DNA of 64,000 bases. Source: Klebsormidium nitens. Taxonomy: Eukaryota > Plantae > Klebsormidiophyceae. Position 1 is the stretch's first letter. Each line of letters opens with the position of its first letter. Positions 13,324 to 64,000 of this stretch are shown here, one piece after another. Location: the NCBI GenBank assembly GCA_000708835.1, contig DF237412.1, forward strand, positions 11,247 to 75,246, read 5' to 3'. The notes under the pieces were generated by a model, which saw only the letters and a list, made by a program, of their open reading frames with translations, had not been told where the DNA came from and searched no databases. Both the position numbers and the translations under genes were made by a program.

Positions 13324-16025
13324 CTGACGTCAGATACTACTAGCTGGAGTTTTTACGATAAGAGCTGTGCTCAAAGGAGCGCCTCGGATGTAACCTAGAA
13401 CTGAACACACGGTGTGAGCGCCATAAAGACAGCATGTATTCACCAGCGCAGTAAAATTCGAAACCCCTCAGCTTGTGGTGCTCTCTTTCGGGTACACGTT
13501 CTTCGAGCCCGCGGACACTGATCAATAGCGAACATGACCTTTTCATGGCCTTCGAGGAGAGCGTGAACCCTCGCAGGTGAGATTGCTGTCTGAAACATTG
13601 CTCAGATGATGCAGACAGACGCATTTCTTGCCTGGGTTTGCTGGCCCGACAGCATACGCGGCCGGCCGCGTCGATCAAAAAGGGGCGGGCTGGGCCGGGC
13701 CGGGGCGGCCCGACCGCCCGGGCGGCCGCGCGGCGCGTTGCCCCTCTGTCGGATCACCGTCATGCGCATGTACACGCACGGGCTTTTAAGAGAAGTGTCC
13801 ATGACGCGGCCGCCGCAACCGGCTGCTAAACCTCTGCCGACGGCACTGAAAGAGCGCGCCAGCAATCTTTTGAAGCCAAAAAAGGGCTTCCGTCAATTCT
13901 GCATTTCTGAATTCGCCTGTCTTAGGCACTACTGAAAGCATCTCCTGTTTCTCTTCCACATTAACGGTTAAGGAAGGAGATCCTGCAAAGCCCTCTGTAT
14001 GCAAGAAGGAGGTTTCTTCCCTCAGCAGGCTTGAATGAGAACAAACTAGTTCTATCTGGCCAGTGCGTGCAGGCAATTCAACGTAAGGCAGCTGCTAAGG
14101 TAAGCCGTCAGTAGACAAGCCTTAGAGGATTTCAAATCTGCTTGTCTCCGGATAAATAATCGTGTGTGATACGTGCCACATCTGGCATTCCTTCTTCACG
14201 AACAGAAATTTCAAATTTGAGGACAGAAGCGTAGTAGATAGAGCGGCTCCTGTCAGAGATACCAGGCCACAATCCCATTTGGAGACATGTGCATTGCTTT
14301 CAACATGCTGGTCGATCGCCGTGTTCCGTGCTCCGTTTTCTGTACGTTCCGAGCAAAGAGACTTCTACCCCAGAGTGAATTGCAGGTTATACTTGCTGAA
14401 AGGCTCGAACATCCTGTTAAAAGCAGATGAAGGAGGCACAATGACGATGCAGCCTTCGTAGAGCTTTGTATGCCAAGTCTCAGCACACGTTCACTGGTCA
14501 GGGCAATCTAAGCAATGGAGATGATCGAGAACAGAGCCTTGGATGAATGATGATCCTCTTTCCAAGAAAATGGCCAAACACAGACTGCTCGGAAGCATGA
14601 AGCACGTCAACAACCTGGCAACCAGAAGAAGTTCAGGTCTGCAGAAGAAAGCCCTAACCTTTTGAATCCATATATGTTAAATCCCCTTCCTCTTGATGCA
14701 GGTGTTGAAAATGACATCTGAACTGTCCTCCAGCAATATGCAATCCTAAGCAAGAAAGAGAGAATCTTCAGCAAAGCGAGAAAGGAGCACCTGGCACCAT
14801 TTTGTGAGCCTGCACTTTCGGTGAGAGCGGCTGCGAAGACATTTTCGTCCGGAATAAATTTCAGTTGCGGGTTCTTTGGATTGTTAATCTAAGCAAGTCT
14901 CGTCAACTGTGGCTTCAATCATGAACGCACAACCTTGTACTTTTCTGCAGAAGTGCTCCAATTTTGGTTCTACAGATTGCTGTCTCAATCAAGCCAAAGA
15001 CTTCCGTAATTTCTCGAGCAGGTTGAGCATCTGCTTTGTCAGCCTCTGACTGAGCCCGATTGCAAAACCATAACTGGCTACTTCTCGTGGATGCACAGTT
15101 TCAGCATTCACGTCCGAAGCCATCTTTGCATGAGACTTCCCAAGCGCAACTTCACCGCATTAACAGGAAAGCGCTTGACATGAATGCCTTACTCTCGATC
15201 CATCTCCTCATCTCCAAAGCTGTACTTGACGGGCATGCTGTGTGCAGCCTTTCGTTTGCATTTTCCCTTGATCTCTCACTGCTATAATACCTGAAGGTCC
15301 TTTTGCTGTCCCGCAGAAAGTCTGCAGCTGAGCAAGCCTGCAGCTCAAACCTGCTCCGAGCTTCACCTGGCGTCGCAAGTTACTGACAAATATTGCGCCC
15401 CCCCTTTTGCAAGCGAAGCTACGCTCATCTTCGACCGTAAGCTAAACACCGTTCTCCAAACAGCTCTCTCGCATTCTGTCGGTCCGCTTTATAATGTCAC
15501 GGCAGTCGACCTCAAACCTATCAAGAAAACAGAAGAGGAGCTTCGTTATACAGTCTCTGAACTCAGGACGATTCATTAGAGGTGATCGGAGCTCTTCAAT
15601 GCCGCAGTGGTGTTATTGGTGCTCTTAGGAGCCGTTGGCCGTACAAATAATTGGACCTTCTGTAGTTGTCTAGGCTTTCACAGTGGTACTCCAAACGCCC
15701 GCTCTCTGAATCGACAGTCTTTTTGACCGATTTTGATCAACATAAACCTTTCTGGAACCATTTTGATAGATATCCATGGCCATACTCCTGTCCTTAACCG
15801 CTGTAATCTCGTAGGTTGGAAAGCTTCAAGACTTCTCTGTTGTATAGAACAGATCTCAATGCGATGCGCTCCTTTCCTGGGGCCAGGCCGAAAGTGTTTT
15901 ACGGGGTGATCACCTCTTTTTCAGCCGACCGCAGCGACAGAACACGCAATCTTTGGTTACCAGGCAGCAAACTTTGCAAAGCATAGAAAATCGGCTGATT
16001 GACTTTAGGTTTTGTTCCTTTCCAG

Positions 16026-18232
16026 CATGGATACTAAGCAGCAGCATGCACGTGCATCAAGTGACAACGCAGGCGCCATTGGCTGGGAAGAGGCAGCGGG
16101 CGAGCTCCCAGATAACGCCCTTTGGCGCAAAGAGGAGGTGAGACATCGTATTATGCTCCTTTCTTTGACCCTTAGTATCCGATAAGTGCACTTAGACGCT
16201 GCCGTCATCATGGTTGTTCGGTTCACTCTTTGGCGGATCTGGAAAATGTTGTTTGGGATGTCAGCTGGCTCGATTTTTATATTCGTCAAAGCCAGCCAGA
16301 GTGCTGTAAAGACTTACACAAGGCTTTTCAATAGCTCGACTTTAGAGACACCTTCTTTTTATCAGGGTGATGCCTAAAGCTTTCAGTATGATTTTCAACT
16401 CCTCAAGAAACACTCCGACACAAATACAATAGGTTCTCCGGTCTCTTCCGACGAACTTCAGCTCCTGTTCTCCGTCCCGAATGTCTTCCTTGCCTTCGTC
16501 CTTTCCTTCTCTTCCGTGGATCCTTGTAAGCTGGCTGCTGTTGAAAGCGTCTTCTTTTATTGCGGGATCTCCTAAATTGACTCGTATTCGTTAAACGCCG
16601 GTTTTGCATTCTCCATTCTTTTCGGGTACAACCTCATTCCTCGTCTCCAAAGAGCAAAAGATCTGTAAGCAAAAATGAACCTTAAGCCCTCAGTTGAAAC
16701 GTGCTGTCCGCTTTCTCGCGCTCTCTCTCACATCCAAAGTCCCGGAACACACTATACAATTGCCGTTCGATTCTACGCCTTCCCATCATGCAGATCGACC
16801 AGTATTTCCGTAGCATCTTCCCCTCGAAAAGTCTTCAAACGACCAGGTTCTTCGTTATCTGCTTTTCCAGAGCATCAAAGGAGCGGTTCCTGCTCCTCCC
16901 TCCCAGCCGGCCCGCCTTCCTAAGCCCTCCGAGTCCAGCAACTCCTCGAACTCTGTCGCCCCGAAAAACTCCCAGGATAAGACCGACGGCCTCCCGACCG
17001 GCTTTTCCCCCACGTCAAGCGAACACACCCCTCGAAGCACAGCCCCCGAGCAAAAGCCCCACTCGACCACGGAAGTCTGGCAGCCAAACCACTGGATTCA
17101 GTCGGCAGCAGCATCGACTGTGAGAAAGCCTGCCCCCGGAGAACTCCCGGAACCCCAAGCAGTGTCTGCCACTGTCCTTTCGGACGGGTCTGACGAGGTC
17201 GGTCACGATGACGTCGGAGCCGAAGGGACGTCTCTCTCGCCTGCCAAAACGAGCGACAGCGGAGCCGGGCAGGGCGACCAGGACTGGGCGAGAAATCTCC
17301 CTCCGCACCTTCTGGCATTTCACCGCGAGATTGAGGAGCTGAAAGGGCCCGAACACGCAGAGACGCGAAGCCGCCTCGGTATGAAGCTACTGCGCCGGTA
17401 TCTGGACTACGTGGTGGGACCGTTAAGCACAAATTGTAAGTCTCACTCGTTGAATGGCCACCAGATTGCAAGTCGCAGGACATGAGCATTGCTATTTTCT
17501 CGAATGGCCGCACAGTACATGTAATCTCTTTGGCACTCTTACTGTGGCGGAAAGGAAAGATTGAACCTCGCTGGCAGAGACAAGTATACTCTCTGCTCCT
17601 CGTGAACGTGATAGTTTAACCACAATAGAAACAAGAGAGAAGGAGGAGGACGTAGCACTTGAATGTTGCTCAGTCCCTATTTGACTTAGGAGGGAAGTTA
17701 CTCCTGCGTGCCAAATCTACCCTGACGATGAAGGATGAGAAACAAAGCTTCTCATTTGCCGCCTTCTCTGTGCTCGTAAAGATTCACGTTTGCATATAAT
17801 CGAGAATAGTAATTGACGAGTTGGTGAAGGACTGACCTTCTGATGGCATCAGAAATCACATTTGAACGGACCGTACGCCACCTATTGATCCACAAGCGGC
17901 TAAGTGGAGGCTCTCTCCGTCTTTCCACAGGACCGCAGGACACAGCTTGAGTTCATGATCAAGGCCTACGAGTTCGAACCTCTTGTACTGGAGACGCTGC
18001 ACAAGCTCTTGTCTGAGTGCCCGTAAGTCTTCCGCACTGTCCGTTCCTACCGGCTTGCTCCTGAGTACCTGGACGGTCGGCTTGACATAATCTGGCACGA
18101 ATGTTTTACTTCACTTGTTGGGGGCTGTTGATCAACCGTCCTCCAGACATTTCGAAAACTTGGAACCTCTGATCCGTCAAAAGGGAAGTGGTGTCAAAAA
18201 GTTTTGGAGCATCCATAGAGACCCGAGGTGAA
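16026..18232 (+). CDS. Hypothetical protein, spliced; Pro/Ser-rich N-terminal half and helical C-terminal half
   Basis: Exons at about 16026-16137 (MDTKQQ...RKEE|GTGAG), 16871-17435 (open, ends RYLDYVVGPLSTN|GTAAG), about 17931-18021 (DRRTQLEFMIKAYEFEPLVLETLHKLLSEC|GTAAGT) and about 18146-18232 (HFENLEPLIRQKG...DPR*). The last two join in phase; one middle junction is unresolved. Confidence 0.55.
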
Positions 18233-18738
18233 TGGAAGCGTCGTAGCGCTCTCGAATAGTAATGTTTGTCACGCTCCTTCCCGAGCACTAAGTGAACGTC
18301 TCTAGCGCCCGGCCTGATGCATCATAAAGTTGTTCAGCCCGTTGCTTCGGCTCGTGAGAGTTGCTCAAGGACCCTGGAGACTGAGAAGAAGACTTTCTTA
18401 TGAAACTTTTGTTTGCCAGAGGGCGTCGAAGCGCATGTTTTCCTCAGCGACCGTACACCCCCCAAAAAGTCGCCCAAGAAATCCAACCAACGTCTGGTCT
18501 CTGGGATATCGACCGGTCCGTCGCATTTTGCAATCTTGGGCAGGATCCACGTAGAGGACAGGCGTCCCCTAAAACTTGGCGGTGCGCTTTTTTTGGGCAG
18601 CCGATGACGTCATCTTACCTCCTCCCGAATTGCTGCGTTTGCCTCCGGGTTCACATACCTCCGAGACTTTACGGTTTTGCTGAACTTCCTTCTGGAGCCA
18701 GATCTTGCGTCCGAAAACGGGCCGCAAACGCCCTCCGA

Positions 18739-19934
18739 ATGTTAAAATGCTTGACCGAAACGGTGACGCCAGCTGATTCCGTCAATTTGCGCGTCTTCCC
18801 GTTCACTCAAGTTGCTGACAGAGCCGCCCCCAACTCTTGCAGCCCCACCCCAACCCCCGCCGCGCGTTTCAAGCCCGGAGGCGACCTCAGCACTGTCGCG
18901 TCCACTGTCGAGAGCTTCATCTTTGGCATAGCGCGGACTCTCTGTGAAGGACGAGAGAAGGGCGCATTCAACCTGCTCCAATGCGACCAAGGGCTGTGCG
19001 ACTGGCTCCTCAAGGGGTGGAAGGGCCGGCTTCCGCCGCCAGTCGTTGCCGCCTTCTCCGAGTCGAGCCCGGAAGAGATTACCGACGACGCTGCGGGCCT
19101 GCTCGTTGCCCTCTACCACATGAGGTGAGTGACGGCCAGCAATTTACAGTTAGATGCTAATCGAGTTTGTTGCGAGGCGTGTATAACTTGACGGTTCTGT
19201 CGATTTGCGAGATCCCGACATATTAACGGTTAACATTGGACTGGTAATCTTTTTAGTCTCTAGAAACGACACTTCCGGTAAGTAGATAGCAACGCCTGTT
19301 CTCAACCTTTTGCTGTGAGGTCCCAAAATCACGGTCGGACAAGTCAAGTCACCTCGGTGCTTCGTTTGGACACCAATTACAGCTCGCTCGCAGACATCAT
19401 TTGATTCCTCTGAAGCACTTTCTACCTCTTTTTTGAGAACGCGTCCTCGAAGCGCCGTTCCAATGGGTCTGCAGGCTCTCCGCTTGTTGAACTTCTCGTG
19501 ACACACTCACAATAGGACACTAGAATCCTCAGTATTTTCACATCAGGTCGGTTGCGCTGCCACCACCCAACAACTTTATAACCCCCGTTGAACTTCAAAA
19601 TGCAAAGAGAATCTTTTCTTCCCGCAGCGTTCATGCTCGGAGCCACCCCTGCCTGCGCATCCAAGGCGACGACTACTGCCTCAGCGCGGCACTCTTCGCG
19701 TGGCGCGAGTGGGGCAGCGACCTGCTAATATTCCTGCTAAACACCTTCTATTACGCAATCGACCATCCCCCCACCCTCCTCCACTCCAAGTGCACGCCGC
19801 TCGGCAACGACCCGTCGGTCTCCGCTTCGTTCCACGGGCAACTGTGGGATGCAAAGTTGACCGGGGAACTGCAACAGCTTCTGTGGATCCTGCGCGCGCT
19901 GTCCCTGAAGCAGAGCGCGGCACGCGCCTCGTAG
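18739..19934 (+). CDS. Hypothetical protein, two exons
   Basis: Exon to 19124 (...ITDDAAGLLVALYHM AG|GTGAGT) joins in phase to 19628-19934 (CCCGCAG|C GTT CAT...; VHARSHPCLRIQGDDYCLSAALFAWREWGSDLLIFLLNTFYY...ARAS*). The start codon is tentative. Confidence 0.65.
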
Positions 19935-58310: not shown

Positions 58311-59534
58311 TGACAAAATGAGGTGGAAGAAGCGGTAAGTTACGGTTCCGCTAACGCATGGACTATAACAATCAACTAGAGCCGCGACAAAGACAAGTGG
58401 GTTTGGAGACGATCAATCACTTCTTTCGATCGGCTTTGAGTAGGACGCTCGACTTGGGTTAGCTAAGGCGTACACACATGAGCTCAACGACAACAGCGGG
58501 CCGGAAACAATAGAAGAAACGAGCTTTTTCATGGCATCTCTCTGAGCAATAAAAACATTCTCTAATACCCTAGCCTTCAGCGCCAAGCGAAATCAAACAC
58601 ACCGATCACGCCCCAACTAGGACATCTATAGTTCGTGAGAGACAGCATCGCACTCTTGGAGAGCCACAACCAGCCTAGGCTTAGCCGGCCCGGCCAAGCG
58701 CGACCGTAGGATGAATGATCTGACTCCGCACGGGCGATCGTGGCCGTCGGTCCCAATCATATAATGAATTTTGGGAAAAACGATAGACCCAATCTCAAGA
58801 AGGAAGACGGACGCTGGTTCAGGGCGCTTCGGAGGAGCTATTTTGAATTCCATTTTTTGGCGGAAGAGGTCGTTGCGGCGCCCGTCCACCAACAGATTGG
58901 ATTCTGAAAAGGTGCAAGCGAAGCAAGCACCGACCGATCAGAGTGCACAGCAAGTTTCAACCGCTGGATGCTGGTATTTAGGGCGCCAAGTGATGCAAAG
59001 CGTCGGAGCTGGCTGACCAGGGGGTATGGCCAGCACATCAGTCTTTTGCATGGTCCTCCGCGAGCAATTTTTACTAGTGGCTGAGAAGCGAGCCTTATGT
59101 TCTTGACGATAGGGTCTAAACTTTCACCGCACAGTTTGTTCAGATTCGAAGGGGAGAGGCGGCCAGCTCAGAGCAGGTGCGTGGCATTGGGGTGAAATTG
59201 ACTACTTTGAGATGCATCATTCTCTGCTTTGCTTGCAGCAGCATCTAAGATTATCTGATGGATGCTTCTGGATGCTTTTGAATGCTCTGCCTAGGATCTT
59301 CTTGCCCTGAAGTATCACACACACCTTGCCATTTCAAACATCTGGGTTCCCTGTTCTTTGTGGAGCCCTCCAGCATTGGCTTTCAGAGCTCGAAAGCAGA
59401 GCCTCATCTTGCAAGAAGGGTTGCTGGCTTGTCAGGAGCACACCGCAAGGAATGATTCTGTGAATATGTTCTTACGAGTTTCGTGTGTTGTATGCAGGTG
59501 CTGACTGCTCTGCTGGCTGCTCTGTAGTTTCTGC

Positions 59535-60538
59535 ATGGCGGGTGGGGAGAGAGAGCGCAAAGGCAAGAGGAAGGAGCAAAGGTTTAGTGATCGCCCCCGT
59601 CCAAAAAGAACCAAGGCTGAATTGAAAGAGCTTGCTGAGCGTCGAGAAGGCTTTTATCTTACTGCAAAAGCAGGAACTACCTTCAGTTCCTGTCTAAGGG
59701 ATGGGCACAAGTTGGTCGGAGATCTGAAGGAATGTCCAAAGTGCCATGCCCAGTATGCCAGAGCCCATCTCTCTGAAGCCCTGGGGCCCCAGCAAGAATG
59801 CTTGCATCTTTGATGCAAGAAACATTGCAGCTTTCTGGCGGCGCAAGATTTCCTGGAGGTTGAATAACGCCAGCCACTCGGGCGTGCTCTGGGTTATGCA
59901 GCCGTTTGTTCCTCTGGCAGCTTTCAAAGCCACCTTCTCTGAGGACTGGGATGAGCTTGCTGTCAAAACAGCAACAGTCACAACGCATGTGAAGCTTTTG
60001 GAGACAACCAGAGAAGTAGAGGAGTTCTGCGCTTTCAACCTTGTCAATGAGAAGAGGGGCGCCGGCCCGTGCAAGCTGTTGAGCACTGGCGAGCTTCTAA
60101 TTGTGGTGCCGCCAATTGAGGTCACGCATACCTACAGTAAAGCAGCCGGCGCAAGGGTTCATTTTCTGTATGGATGGGTAAAAATGACAATCGTTGGGAA
60201 CATCAGCAAGACAGAGGGCATGCTCGAACCAGCACAAGGTTGGCGCTTTGTTGAGTGGTGGATCAGGGACAAAGCGTTTGACATGCTTTCTGATCTGGAA
60301 ATGGCAGTCTCGGAAGAGATGGTGGCGGCCTCTGAAGCCAAGCTCAGGAGCGAGTTCCCAAGTGACCAGGCATTTGACATGGCTAGGGTACACAGAAGCA
60401 TGGTGGCTGAGCACTATGTGATGCCGCGCCCTCGGACCAAAGAGCAGGTGGTCAGAATGCGCAAGAAGGCTGCTGAGATGCAGGCGGAGGGTTTGGAGGA
60501 CGGCTTCCATGATGTGCCAATGGCAGAGGACGAAGCAG
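59535..60538 (+). CDS. Unknown protein convergent with the transposase; split into two overlapping frames (59535-59813 and 59746 onward)
   Basis: A basic N-terminus with C/H cluster (SCLRDGHKLVGDLKECPKCH) is followed in the +1 frame by about 260 codons of protein-like sequence, ending at donor GCAG|GTAAGC (60538). Splice-like signals also occur upstream (59176-59498). Confidence 0.5.
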
Positions 60539-60763
60539 GTAAGCCTTTCTCATTGCATGCATATGTAGGTTCAGTACTCAAGGGTTTTGACTCTTCGAAT
60601 GTTGCAAGCAATCATCCTCTCTGCAAATCTTATTCAGCATTCTTTGTGTCACATTGTTTTATGTTCAACTCGTTCTCTACATCTAGCTTTCGCTACATCT
60701 TGCTACCTGTCCTGTCAACTGCGACTGTCAACTGCGAAAGTACCCTGATTAATACAACACTTT

Positions 60764-63700
60764 TTATATGGGGCGCGCAGATGCTGGAATTACGCGGCCC
60801 CCGGTGGTCCTTCCTCTACCTCTGCCACCCCTGCCACCCCTGGCCCTCCCCCTCTCCCGTCCTGCCGCCGCTGCTGGTGCCCCCCCTTCGCCCCCAACTG
60901 CCAGGCGGACTCCTCCGCCGGAGCCTCTGATGAGTTCACCTCCCGCTATAGCTGGCGCTGCGCTCCCCCCCTCAGTCGCAGCCCCCGCCCCAGGCACGAC
61001 CCCTTCAGCGCCTGGCACCGTCGCAGGCCCGAGTTGGACGCCAGACGTGTTTGAGGGCCTGATGATGGAGGCGCTGGCTGCGGCGCGCTCTCCACTTGGG
61101 TCATTGTCTGACTCCCCCTCTTCTTCCTCGCCGGTGAGCTTTCCAACTATGTTCTTGTAGCCCAGGAAAACTCGAGTGATTTCTGGTCCCAACTTTGCCA
61201 GCTTGTTATTGATCTGCGCCTGGCTCCTACTCACCAGCTGCCCCCGCCTCCGAGCCCGCTCGATTGTTTGCTCCGCCGCTTTGCTTCCGTCCCCCAAATA
61301 GCGCCTCTCGTTTCTGCTGACGGGCACAGTGACCGTCTGCGCAAGAGCAATTCGCTCTCGCCCCTTTGCCATCACCTGCAGGTTGCGACCCTTTTGTTGC
61401 TTCTCGTCCACCAACCGTCGATTGGTGAATAACAGCATGTCTGTTTTCCCCTCCTTCAGCTTGGCCTCCACAAACTGCTGTGACATGTCGGAGATGTCGA
61501 CCGGGAACCGCTGCACCATCTCAGGTACGTGGCTCATTGCCTGGTGCATATAGAGCGTTGCTCTATCTGTCCCAAGCTCCGCGGTGTAGCTCTCGACGTA
61601 CGCCACTGCTTTGTCTTGCACAACAATGCTCTTGCCCAGTCGCTCCTCCGCATCCTCAGGGTTGGTGAGGGGTTTCAGCAGCTCGGTGTAAAAGCTCGCC
61701 AGGTTGTCCCAAATCTTCCTGGCAGCGGCGCGCTTGGCGTCGTCCAGGATGGCGATGTCAAGGAAGGTGTTGTATGCGTCTGGGTGCAACAGCACCCTTG
61801 CTTCCCTGCAGAATGTGACAAGGGTTTTGATTAGAATATTTCATTTGTTTGCAGGAAGGATTATTGGTCAGAAGCAAGCAAAGAGCCAAGAGGGCGTGAC
61901 AGCAGTAGGCATAAGACCTCAAGACCAGCAGAGCATACTTAGAGTCAGAGCTACAAGAGTCAGTGCAGTACCTGGTAAAACAGCATGAGCTCAGGATGCC
62001 TCAGGTTGACTTAAGAGTTGCGCAGGTTGACTTAAGAGTTGCGCACGCAGGCTGATCCTCGATCATTCCCAAAGTTCAAGGCCGGGTTGATTGCACTTGC
62101 TCGTCTCATTTGAGTCGAGCTTGTCCTTGGTTTAATTCCAAGGCCGGTCAGAAGCAGAGCCAATTGCGCGGGGTGGTTCAGCTCTGGACGCTCCCAGGAG
62201 GGGCCTGTGCAAGCAGAATTATGTTGCATAAGAAGTCAACATGAAGGTGAGACACCGCCTCTTGAGCCACTCTACTTACCTGCCAATGAAGTTGATGTCT
62301 TGAGTGTCCTTCTTTTTGTCGCCGCTGGTCTTTCGCTGCTCCAGCTTTTTGCACCCAAGGTGGAGGGCTTTGATCAAGGCGTTGACAGCCTCAGTCTTTT
62401 CGGGGGTGTTGAGGTTCTCAGCCACGGTCCGGAGAAAGGTGATGGCCATCAGTCGTAGTAGAAGGTGTAGGATGCAAATCACGTAGGCCGTGATGGGGAA
62501 CTTGAAGAGTGGCGGTGTGCCAAACCTCATGCCAGCGTGCGATTGCTGGAAGTTTTTGACCTGTTGTTTGGTTTCAGGGGCTTTGGAGTTTTTGACCGCG
62601 TCTTGGTCGGGGAAGGGTTCGTGATAGTAGGGGCAGTCGACGTCTGGTCCGGTTGTCCATGGGCGGTGTGTCGCCGCGGCCATACTTTCCGTCGTGCAGG
62701 GTTTCGCAGGTAGGGGTACTTTCCAGCCCTCGGCGTTCAGGCACGCCTTCCCGTAGTTGTCTTTGTGCTGCTCACAGAAGCAGCACCCCGTGAGTGCTGA
62801 GGCTCCAGAGTGGCCGAGGAGCTCGCACATGAGGACGTAATCTGCCCCCAGGGTCTGGTCCACGTCGTAGGCTGTGTTGTCAATCTGCATCCCCCCGTAC
62901 GCCAGGTCATCCATGTGCTCTAGGAAGGGTTGCAGGTACTCTTGGTAGGTCGAGTACTTGTCTTTCCCCTCGAAGATTAGGGCGACCCGCATGTCTTTGG
63001 GGGAATGGGTTACGACCCTCTGGTTTCCGAGGAGCTTAAACCCCCATATGCTATGCGACTGGCCCCTTATCCATCCGGCAGCGTCACCCCCCCAATGCAA
63101 CCACAACTTGTCCTTAGCCAGTTGCGCGCGGCTCTGCAGGTACCCCTTTTCCCGGTCCTGCTTGACGGTTTCCTCGATGAGCTGCTTGAGATCTGCCCAG
63201 CACGCCGTGCCATCCTTGTTTTGGAGGAGGGGGATGATGGCGTGGAGGGCTTCCCGGTGGTCGTTGACACGGTTTTTGGACTTCAAGAGAGGTAGGAAAA
63301 TCTTGCTCCCCTTCCCCATGATCTCCAGGGGGATCCACTCCTTGAGGCGCGGATCGTAGGTTTTGCCGAGCAGGTTAATGAGGGCCTGCCACTTCCCCCC
63401 ATGACCGACCTTGCAGTGAATCTGCACAGCTAGACACTGGTTGAGCGTCCAAGCCTCTTCAATGGCCTTAACCACTGCGCGCTGATGGGGATGCAGCCAG
63501 ACAGGGTGCAGGCGGCACAGCTTCTCAAAGGCTGCTTTACTGTTTACAGCGTCTGTTGTAATGAGCTGATACTCTTTGCGGTGGCGGATATAATTCTGGT
63601 AGAGGGCGTTTTGACGGGTCTCCAGGCTGACAAAACCGTCGCGTAACAGGCTTTCAACCCTTTTAGCCATCTTTACCAATGTAGGCTTACTGTTACCGCC

Positions 63701-64000
63701 CTGCATTCTCCTCTCCTTTACAGCAGCAACCAGGATGCTTGGGCTCTGCTTGCGCAACTGATTGCGGTGCTGAACTCGGAGGGCTTGACTCTGCATGTGT
63801 TGCTGTGTCAGCCTCTTGTGTAGATTTTCAAGCTGCTCGGCGTGCTCTGCTCTCATGGACGCAATCTGTGCCTGTGCAGCTGTAACATATGCATCGTATC
63901 TCTGCTGAACCACGTCGGCTTCCCTGCTCAAACGCTCTGTAACTGATCGGACAGCAAGCGTCCTTTTAGGAGGTGGGGCAGCAAATCTACCCCCTGCTCG
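60764..64000 (-). mobile_element. RAG1-core/Transib/Chapaev-like DDE transposase gene, 2 exons, at least 920 aa, 5' end beyond the window
   Basis: Frame is open from 64000 to 62280; intron 62279-61806 (CAG|GTAAGT ... CTGCAG|G); exon 61805-60764. Motifs in RAG1 order: WGGD (63083-63085), GADYVLMCELLGHSGASALTGCCFC (D at 62840-62842, CxxC), CILHLLLR, FIGREARVLL across the splice, YMHQAMSHVPEM, SQQFVE (E at 61466-61468). Confidence 0.85.
62002..62043. repeat. 21-bp perfect tandem duplication in the transposase intron
   Basis: CAGGTTGACTTAAGAGTTGCG x2. Confidence 0.95.

Follow-up and report, generated by a model that had tools for sequence, protein, structure and literature searches.

We consider it likely that the last 5.3 kb (positions 58665-64000) of a 64,000-nucleotide stretch of the Klebsormidium nitens genome (contig DF237412.1, assembly GCA_000708835.1; the whole stretch is called the window, and its numbering is used throughout) are the right-hand part of a two-gene cut-and-paste transposon of 6-7 kb. 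The element would belong to a green-algal lineage of its own within the CMCT clade (EnSpm/CACTA, Mirage, Chapaev and Transib), related to Transib without being a Transib in the strict sense. Its left ~1.1 kb would lie past the end of the scaffold, and the copy is probably defective. Profile comparisons and a predicted structure indicate that the homology of its transposase to the RAG1 core is real. K. nitens is a filamentous streptophyte alga of the green lineage; to our knowledge, nearly all work on RAG1 and Transib concerns animals, and the other CMCT lineages are without a solved structure.

The transposase gene lies on the minus strand and is 100% identical, in a database search, to KFL_004630110, a deposited K. 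nitens model of 852 residues (P0001) whose numbering is used for all residues below. Its frame is open from 64000 to 62280 (exon A, reaching the scaffold end), is followed by an intron of 474 nt with GT at 62279 and AG at 61806, and resumes from 61805 to 60767 (exon B) before a stop codon at 60766-60764. The spliced gene of 2763 nt has 920 sense codons and no stop other than the terminal one, in agreement with an initial annotation, made from the sequence alone, that had described an uninterrupted spliced frame of at least 920 codons. The identical intron is present in the deposited model, and its position is common to all homologues of the Klebsormidium clade, whose open reading frames (ORFs) stop at NFIGR. 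Relatives that have no intron read straight through the junction. Between paralogues the intron cannot be aligned, and both flanking exons are conserved.

The motifs named in that annotation are all present, as are their spacings of 81 residues between the two aspartates, 300 from the second aspartate to the glutamate and 21 from the second histidine to the glutamate. Exon A carries HWGGD (D238, 63085-63083), GADY (D319, 62842-62840), CCFC (C338 and C341, 62785-62774) and CILH (C441 and H444), and IGREARVL spans the splice junction. Exon B contributes YMHQAMSHVPEM (H593 at 61546-61544, H598 at 61531-61529) and QQFVE (E619, 61468-61466); beyond them, the C-terminal part is built of helical domains and a tail that is RGG-rich and disordered.

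Relatives of this protein are numerous. An exhaustive HMMER search with a profile of the Klebsormidium clade returned 606 proteins, many of them matched over their full length at E-values of 1e-59 to 1e-19. The nearest named ones are all from green algae, namely Pterosperma (a transcript), Cymbomonas and Mesostigma, and the remainder are metagenomic. An alignment of 35 homologues that share 17-23% identity shows no variation in twelve columns (D238, D319, C338, C341, H377, C388, H420, H444, G505, H593, H598 and E619), and at such divergence the conservation of the catalytic and zinc-binding positions cannot be attributed to chance. Compared with the PDB in HMMER, the profile of these 35 sequences matched mouse RAG1 (E 1.7e-12) and BbRAG1L of amphioxus (E 3.4e-9), and a profile restricted to proteins of the green lineage matched BbRAG1L at E 1.8e-4. 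RAG1 appears only after more distant relatives join the profile. HzTransib was matched by neither of the two profiles, Pfam gave no match on both exons and the full proteins, and a phmmer search of the transposase against the PDB was likewise negative. When the alignment of 35 sequences was used in a word-indexed search, only the Klebsormidium clade was recovered.

The HMMER alignment pairs the same residues as the initial annotation had proposed. It sets GGD..G..G....C..C against the GYDEK..CTLC block of RAG1 (D708, C727, C730), F.GrecekLl against NGNFARKL, and LY.H....H.P...S.QG.E against YFHKTLAHVPEI..SEGNE (H937, H942, E962), the RAG1 numbers being those we take as established. As in RAG1 and RAG1L, the two cysteines follow the second aspartate by 19 and 22 residues; the histidine pair stands 21 residues ahead of the glutamate, compared with 20 in RAG1. 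The two histidines are five residues apart, again as in RAG1; in plant CACTA transposases the spacing is four.

Structure prediction extends this likeness to the whole core. A first AlphaFold (AF2) run on a shallow alignment gave a poor model, with a predicted local distance difference test score (pLDDT) of 58, and was superseded by a model built with 75 homologues (pLDDT 81.9, predicted template modelling score 0.75). With VIA-align, residues 111-668 of this model superimpose on residues 459-1008 of RAG1 at Z 22.1, with a root-mean-square deviation of 3.8 over 467 residues, so that the aligned part of RAG1 is everything past the nonamer-binding domain. BbRAG1L follows at Z 20.1, then HzTransib with 426 of 480 residues aligned (Z 19.5). 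After these come the P element (Z 11) and Hermes (Z 7). The model thus shares with RAG1 and RAG1L (Z 20-22) the same architecture, from the dimerisation and DNA-binding domain through the C-terminal domain, and the same DDE triad. It differs from both in an additional C2H2-like finger and an RGG tail, at an identity of 10-13%. Similarly, Foldseek at E ≤1e-5 returned only chains of RAG1, RAG1L and Transib (best E 1e-11; template modelling (TM) score 0.55-0.65 by target). The RAG1-core likeness claimed from the sequence was therefore borne out by AlphaFold and Foldseek, and the coiled-coil N-terminus and RGG tail noted at the same time correspond to a helical N-terminus and a disordered RGG tail in the model of P0001. 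We know of no CACTA, Mirage or Chapaev structure in the PDB. Because CMC structures are missing there, the exclusive ranking of RAG1 and Transib is biased and would be expected for any CMCT relative. In a shape search of the ESM Atlas, clusters of RAG1, arthropod Transib-like proteins, DUF1280 and Transposase_21 all reached a TM score of ~0.5. By language-model features, RAG1 clusters stood at 0.93, with DUF1280 and RAG1 clusters listed and no Transposase_21 set among the 100 nearest listed.

The additional finger deserves a separate remark. A C2H2-type finger with a TG.P-like linker, conserved throughout the family, separates the cysteine half of the RAG1-type zinc site from its histidine half (residues 377-420, minus strand, window 62668-62537, with H377, C388, Y391 in place of a cysteine, and H420). 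It is left unaligned to RAG1 in the HMMER comparisons and is recognisable through profile matches to classical zinc fingers.

The end of the element was located with the help of a paralogue. An inverted pair, CACAACCAGCCTAGGGG, in the locus (L002) of KFL_002680090 (P0003) predicted a terminus of the window copy near 58650, and the motif was found at 58665-58681. On the plus strand, the right end (58665-58764) consists of the terminal inverted repeat CACAACCAGCCTAGG (58665-58679) and the conserved subterminal boxes ACCGTAGGATG (~58703-58713) and GCCGTCGG (~58744-58751). Seven complete elements (5.6-7.5 kb), taken from K. nitens and a Klebsormidium-like genome (Joint Genome Institute (JGI) samples 3300060284/5), carry the 15-bp terminus at either end. 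In every locus the similarity stops at this terminus, and the sequence beyond it, which in the window means outside 58665, is unrelated between copies. The inverted repeats have the form 5'-CACAACCAGCC...GTG, and CACAACCAGCC is present at 17 ends. The subterminal boxes include ACCGTNGGATG and CCGTCGG: common to the left ends are an A-rich box and CCGTCGG(C/T)AAAAT at ~+45, and to the right ends ACCGTNNGATG at ~+40 and GCCGTC at ~+80. Judged by these motifs, the element ends are two-part and asymmetric, with different boxes on the left and on the right. A 14-mer scan of JGI metagenomes for this inverted repeat yielded 120 loci, none of which encodes a relative, and these are regarded as chance matches.

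The flanks of the complete elements carry a 2-bp duplication in five of seven cases (TC, TT, AG, GA and AG); matches of 3, 4 and 5 bp occur in 1/7, 0/7 and 0/7. Among 899 controls with shifted offsets, at most four of the seven elements gave a 2-bp match and none of the controls reached five. Mirage elements, too, duplicate 2 bp. The expectation of terminal repeats starting with CAC and flanked by a 5-bp target-site duplication thus held for the repeats and failed for the length of the duplication.

A count of genomic copies, also suggested by the initial annotation, gives at least eight diverged paralogous loci in K. nitens, with intact copies on DF237217.1 and DF237292.1. Four of the copies sit at scaffold ends (the window copy at 64000, L006, L007 and L008); the short-read assembly breaks at this repeat, and the copy number is therefore probably underestimated. 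Only coding DNA aligns between copies, at ~70% identity. The ratio of non-synonymous to synonymous divergence (dN/dS) between K. nitens copies is 0.09-0.17 at a dS of 1.1-3.1, with synonymous sites near saturation, and the transposase copies are under purifying selection. That the termini have remained near-identical while neutral sites are saturated argues for continued selection on the interaction between the transposase and the element ends.

The second gene of the element lies on the plus strand, from 59535 to a provisional end at 60560, tail-to-tail with the transposase. This arrangement is conserved inside the inverted repeats of L002, L003 and L004, at 41-70% identity. In the partner protein the basic N-terminus hardly varies, and there is a Cys-x2-Cys motif of zinc type. 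The protein has no match in Pfam or the PDB, and its only lead is a weak feature match to zf-MYND. We also weighed a RAG2-like identity for the gene and set it aside, as its sequence gave no kelch or PHD signal.

The state of the window copy calls for a more cautious description than the initial annotation, which had called the transposase apparently intact and potentially active. The frame is indeed open. Base 64000 of the window is, however, the last base of scaffold DF237412.1, which accounts for the missing 5' end: by comparison with P0003, ~52 N-terminal codons and everything upstream are unassembled. Residue 391, the second cysteine position of the C2H2-like finger, is a tyrosine (TAT, 62626-62624), and the cysteine is kept in all other proteins of the Klebsormidium clade and in at least 90% of distant relatives. 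The partner gene is frameshifted by four extra nucleotides at ~59779-59782. Read together, the tyrosine at a near-invariant cysteine, the frameshifted partner and the unassembled 5' end suggest that the copy is probably defective. With these three defects no claim of potential activity can be made for it, and it is no candidate for an active element.

How members of the family would move can be outlined from these features. In the model, D238, D319 and E619 would be the catalytic residues of an RNase-H domain, and C338/C341, just past the second aspartate, would join H593/H598, just ahead of the glutamate, in one zinc site, as C727/C730/H937/H942 do in RAG1. The enzyme would bind the 15-bp termini and cut at CAC; by analogy with RAG1 and Transib, cleavage may proceed by a nick followed by a hairpin, and integration would occur with a 2-bp stagger. 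The partner protein may bind the subterminal boxes or otherwise help synapsis, by analogy with TNPA of En/Spm.

With regard to classification, the CMCT clade has been defined by C(2)C and H(3-4)H motifs, 5'-CA..TG-3' ends and duplications of 2-5 bp (PMC12730594, Kojima 2025). The algal family has C338-x2-C341 and H593-x4-H598, both invariant in the 35 homologues, together with CAC..GTG termini and duplications of 2 bp (five copies) or 3 bp (one copy). As to the family's position inside this clade, the Pfam thresholds of RAG1, Transposase_21, DUF1258 and DUF1280 are reached by none of the 75 relatives. Below threshold, DUF1280 (Chapaev) is matched by 12 of them (at most 23 bits, with a cut-off of 25), DUF1258 (Mirage) weakly by three, RAG1 by one and Transposase_21 by none, and all of these matches cover ~35 residues on the shared block of the second aspartate and CxxC. 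DUF1280 has been grouped with RAG1, and DUF1258 with Transposase_21 (PMC3985635). These sequence features would place the family nearer to the Chapaev and RAG1/Transib side than to the CACTA side. Duplications measure 3-4 bp in Chapaev (PMC4079192) and 5 bp in Transib and RAG-like elements (PMC9435367); with its 2 bp, the algal family agrees on all features with none of the named superfamilies compared here (Transib, Chapaev, Mirage and EnSpm/CACTA). We describe it as a previously unnamed green-algal CMCT lineage of Klebsormidium, Mesostigma, Cymbomonas and Pterosperma.

Other readings of the same data have to be weighed. Membership in the Transib superfamily, as a genuine and very divergent branch, seems improbable to us. 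The family has a RAG1-like fold, cut-and-paste movement and short inverted repeats that begin with CACAA like the recombination signal sequence and the Transib heptamer, yet repeats starting with CAC occur in Transib and CMC elements alike and do not discriminate between them. That strong PDB matches are limited to RAG1, RAG1L and Transib loses weight through the bias of that ranking. The family profile matches RAG1 and the language-model features favour RAG1 clusters, but HzTransib is found by neither profile and the Pfam RAG1 cut-off is passed by no member. Transib elements encode one protein and duplicate 5 bp, whereas the algal elements encode two and leave 2 bp in five of seven complete copies and 5 bp in none. 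With respect to RAG1 and ProtoRAG, the same difference in duplication length is joined by the lack of a RAG2-like partner signal. Transib-like proteins were reported in 'plants' by Tao et al. 2022 (PMC9435367), but Klebsormidium is absent from the supplements of that study. The Transib-like reading of the initial annotation is thus not supported in the strict sense, given the duplication length, the second gene and the Pfam threshold.

Similarly, it is unlikely that the family is an ordinary member of a named CMC-type superfamily such as Mirage, Chapaev, EnSpm/CACTA or Lanisha. The CAC..GTG ends, the 2-bp duplication and the two genes recall En/Spm, as do the subterminal motifs, but Transposase_21 is matched by none of the 75 relatives. 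The DUF1280 and few DUF1258 matches point towards Chapaev and Mirage, and yet they are all short, below threshold and confined to the shared block, and Chapaev differs in its duplication of 3-4 bp. Lanisha (MT647524) was described as a new superfamily in the moss Ceratodon purpureus and is, like the algal family, a streptophyte cut-and-paste lineage of the CMCT clade (PMC8245031, PMC12730594). A family of domesticated recombinase genes that serve the host and no longer move, the other possibility raised in the initial annotation, is highly improbable. The strong and long-standing purifying selection (dN/dS about 0.1), the low copy number and the lack of near-identical recent copies among those seen would suit it. 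Against this, every complete copy is bounded by conserved inverted repeats and flanked by short duplications, the genomic contexts are unrelated and non-syntenic, at four copies the assembly breaks off at a scaffold end, and the partner gene of the window copy is frameshifted.

Several points weigh against our preferred reading of a distinct CMCT transposon lineage. The placement in the clade is indirect, drawn from motifs, element ends, duplication length and sub-threshold Pfam matches, and the fold by itself cannot separate the lineages, because Transposase_21 clusters reach a TM score similar to that of RAG1. A Klebsormidium-only profile does not reach RAG1 in the PDB on its own. Among the complete elements, one has a 3-bp flank match (GTC) and one has none, and the duplications were read only from the flanks of occupied sites. 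The function of the partner gene is drawn by analogy. RNA contigs from four runs include none on the locus, and neighbouring control genes were essentially uncovered too.

A further step can be proposed only tentatively. The family may be an unnamed RAG1-fold lineage of superfamily rank that spans the green lineage (the streptophytes Klebsormidium and Mesostigma, the chlorophytes Cymbomonas and Pterosperma, and many metagenomic relatives) and branches between Chapaev and Transib/RAG1, with the 2-bp duplication, CACAACC ends, asymmetric boxes, the C2H2 finger and the partner gene as its signature. If so, it would offer a non-animal and experimentally tractable outgroup for the origin of the RAG1 architecture and of two-part end recognition.

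The algal family is of interest at its more probable, lower rank as well. Its modelled transposase matches the whole RAG1 core (Z 22) and yet behaves like CMC in its 2-bp footprint and two genes, so that specific residues and ends link the RAG1/Transib and CMC groups. For annotators, the family also puts a name to hundreds of 'hypothetical proteins' outside all Pfam models. V(D)J-like biology in algae is not implied by these findings.

The surroundings of the other copies provided some additional observations. The P0003 element has two neighbours immediately beyond its left inverted repeat (L002:2487-8342), a D5_N primase-like gene and a gene with a weak KDZ transposase match on the opposite strand. 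Their position outside the repeats rules both out as parts of the element, and the pair is probably another mobile element. In the same locus, an ORF in another frame (L002:13609-13944) ends in an RGG tail and ASARPI, an ending conserved in P0001 and P0004; as this ending lies in a different frame, the deposited 3' end of P0003 is probably mis-modelled. On the Klebsormidium-like JGI contigs, genes of long terminal repeat retrotransposons (RVT_1, rve and Chromo) adjoin the elements at L005:1014-2812 and at L130:1-5186 and 14930-19318, and the surroundings of these two elements look rich in repeats.

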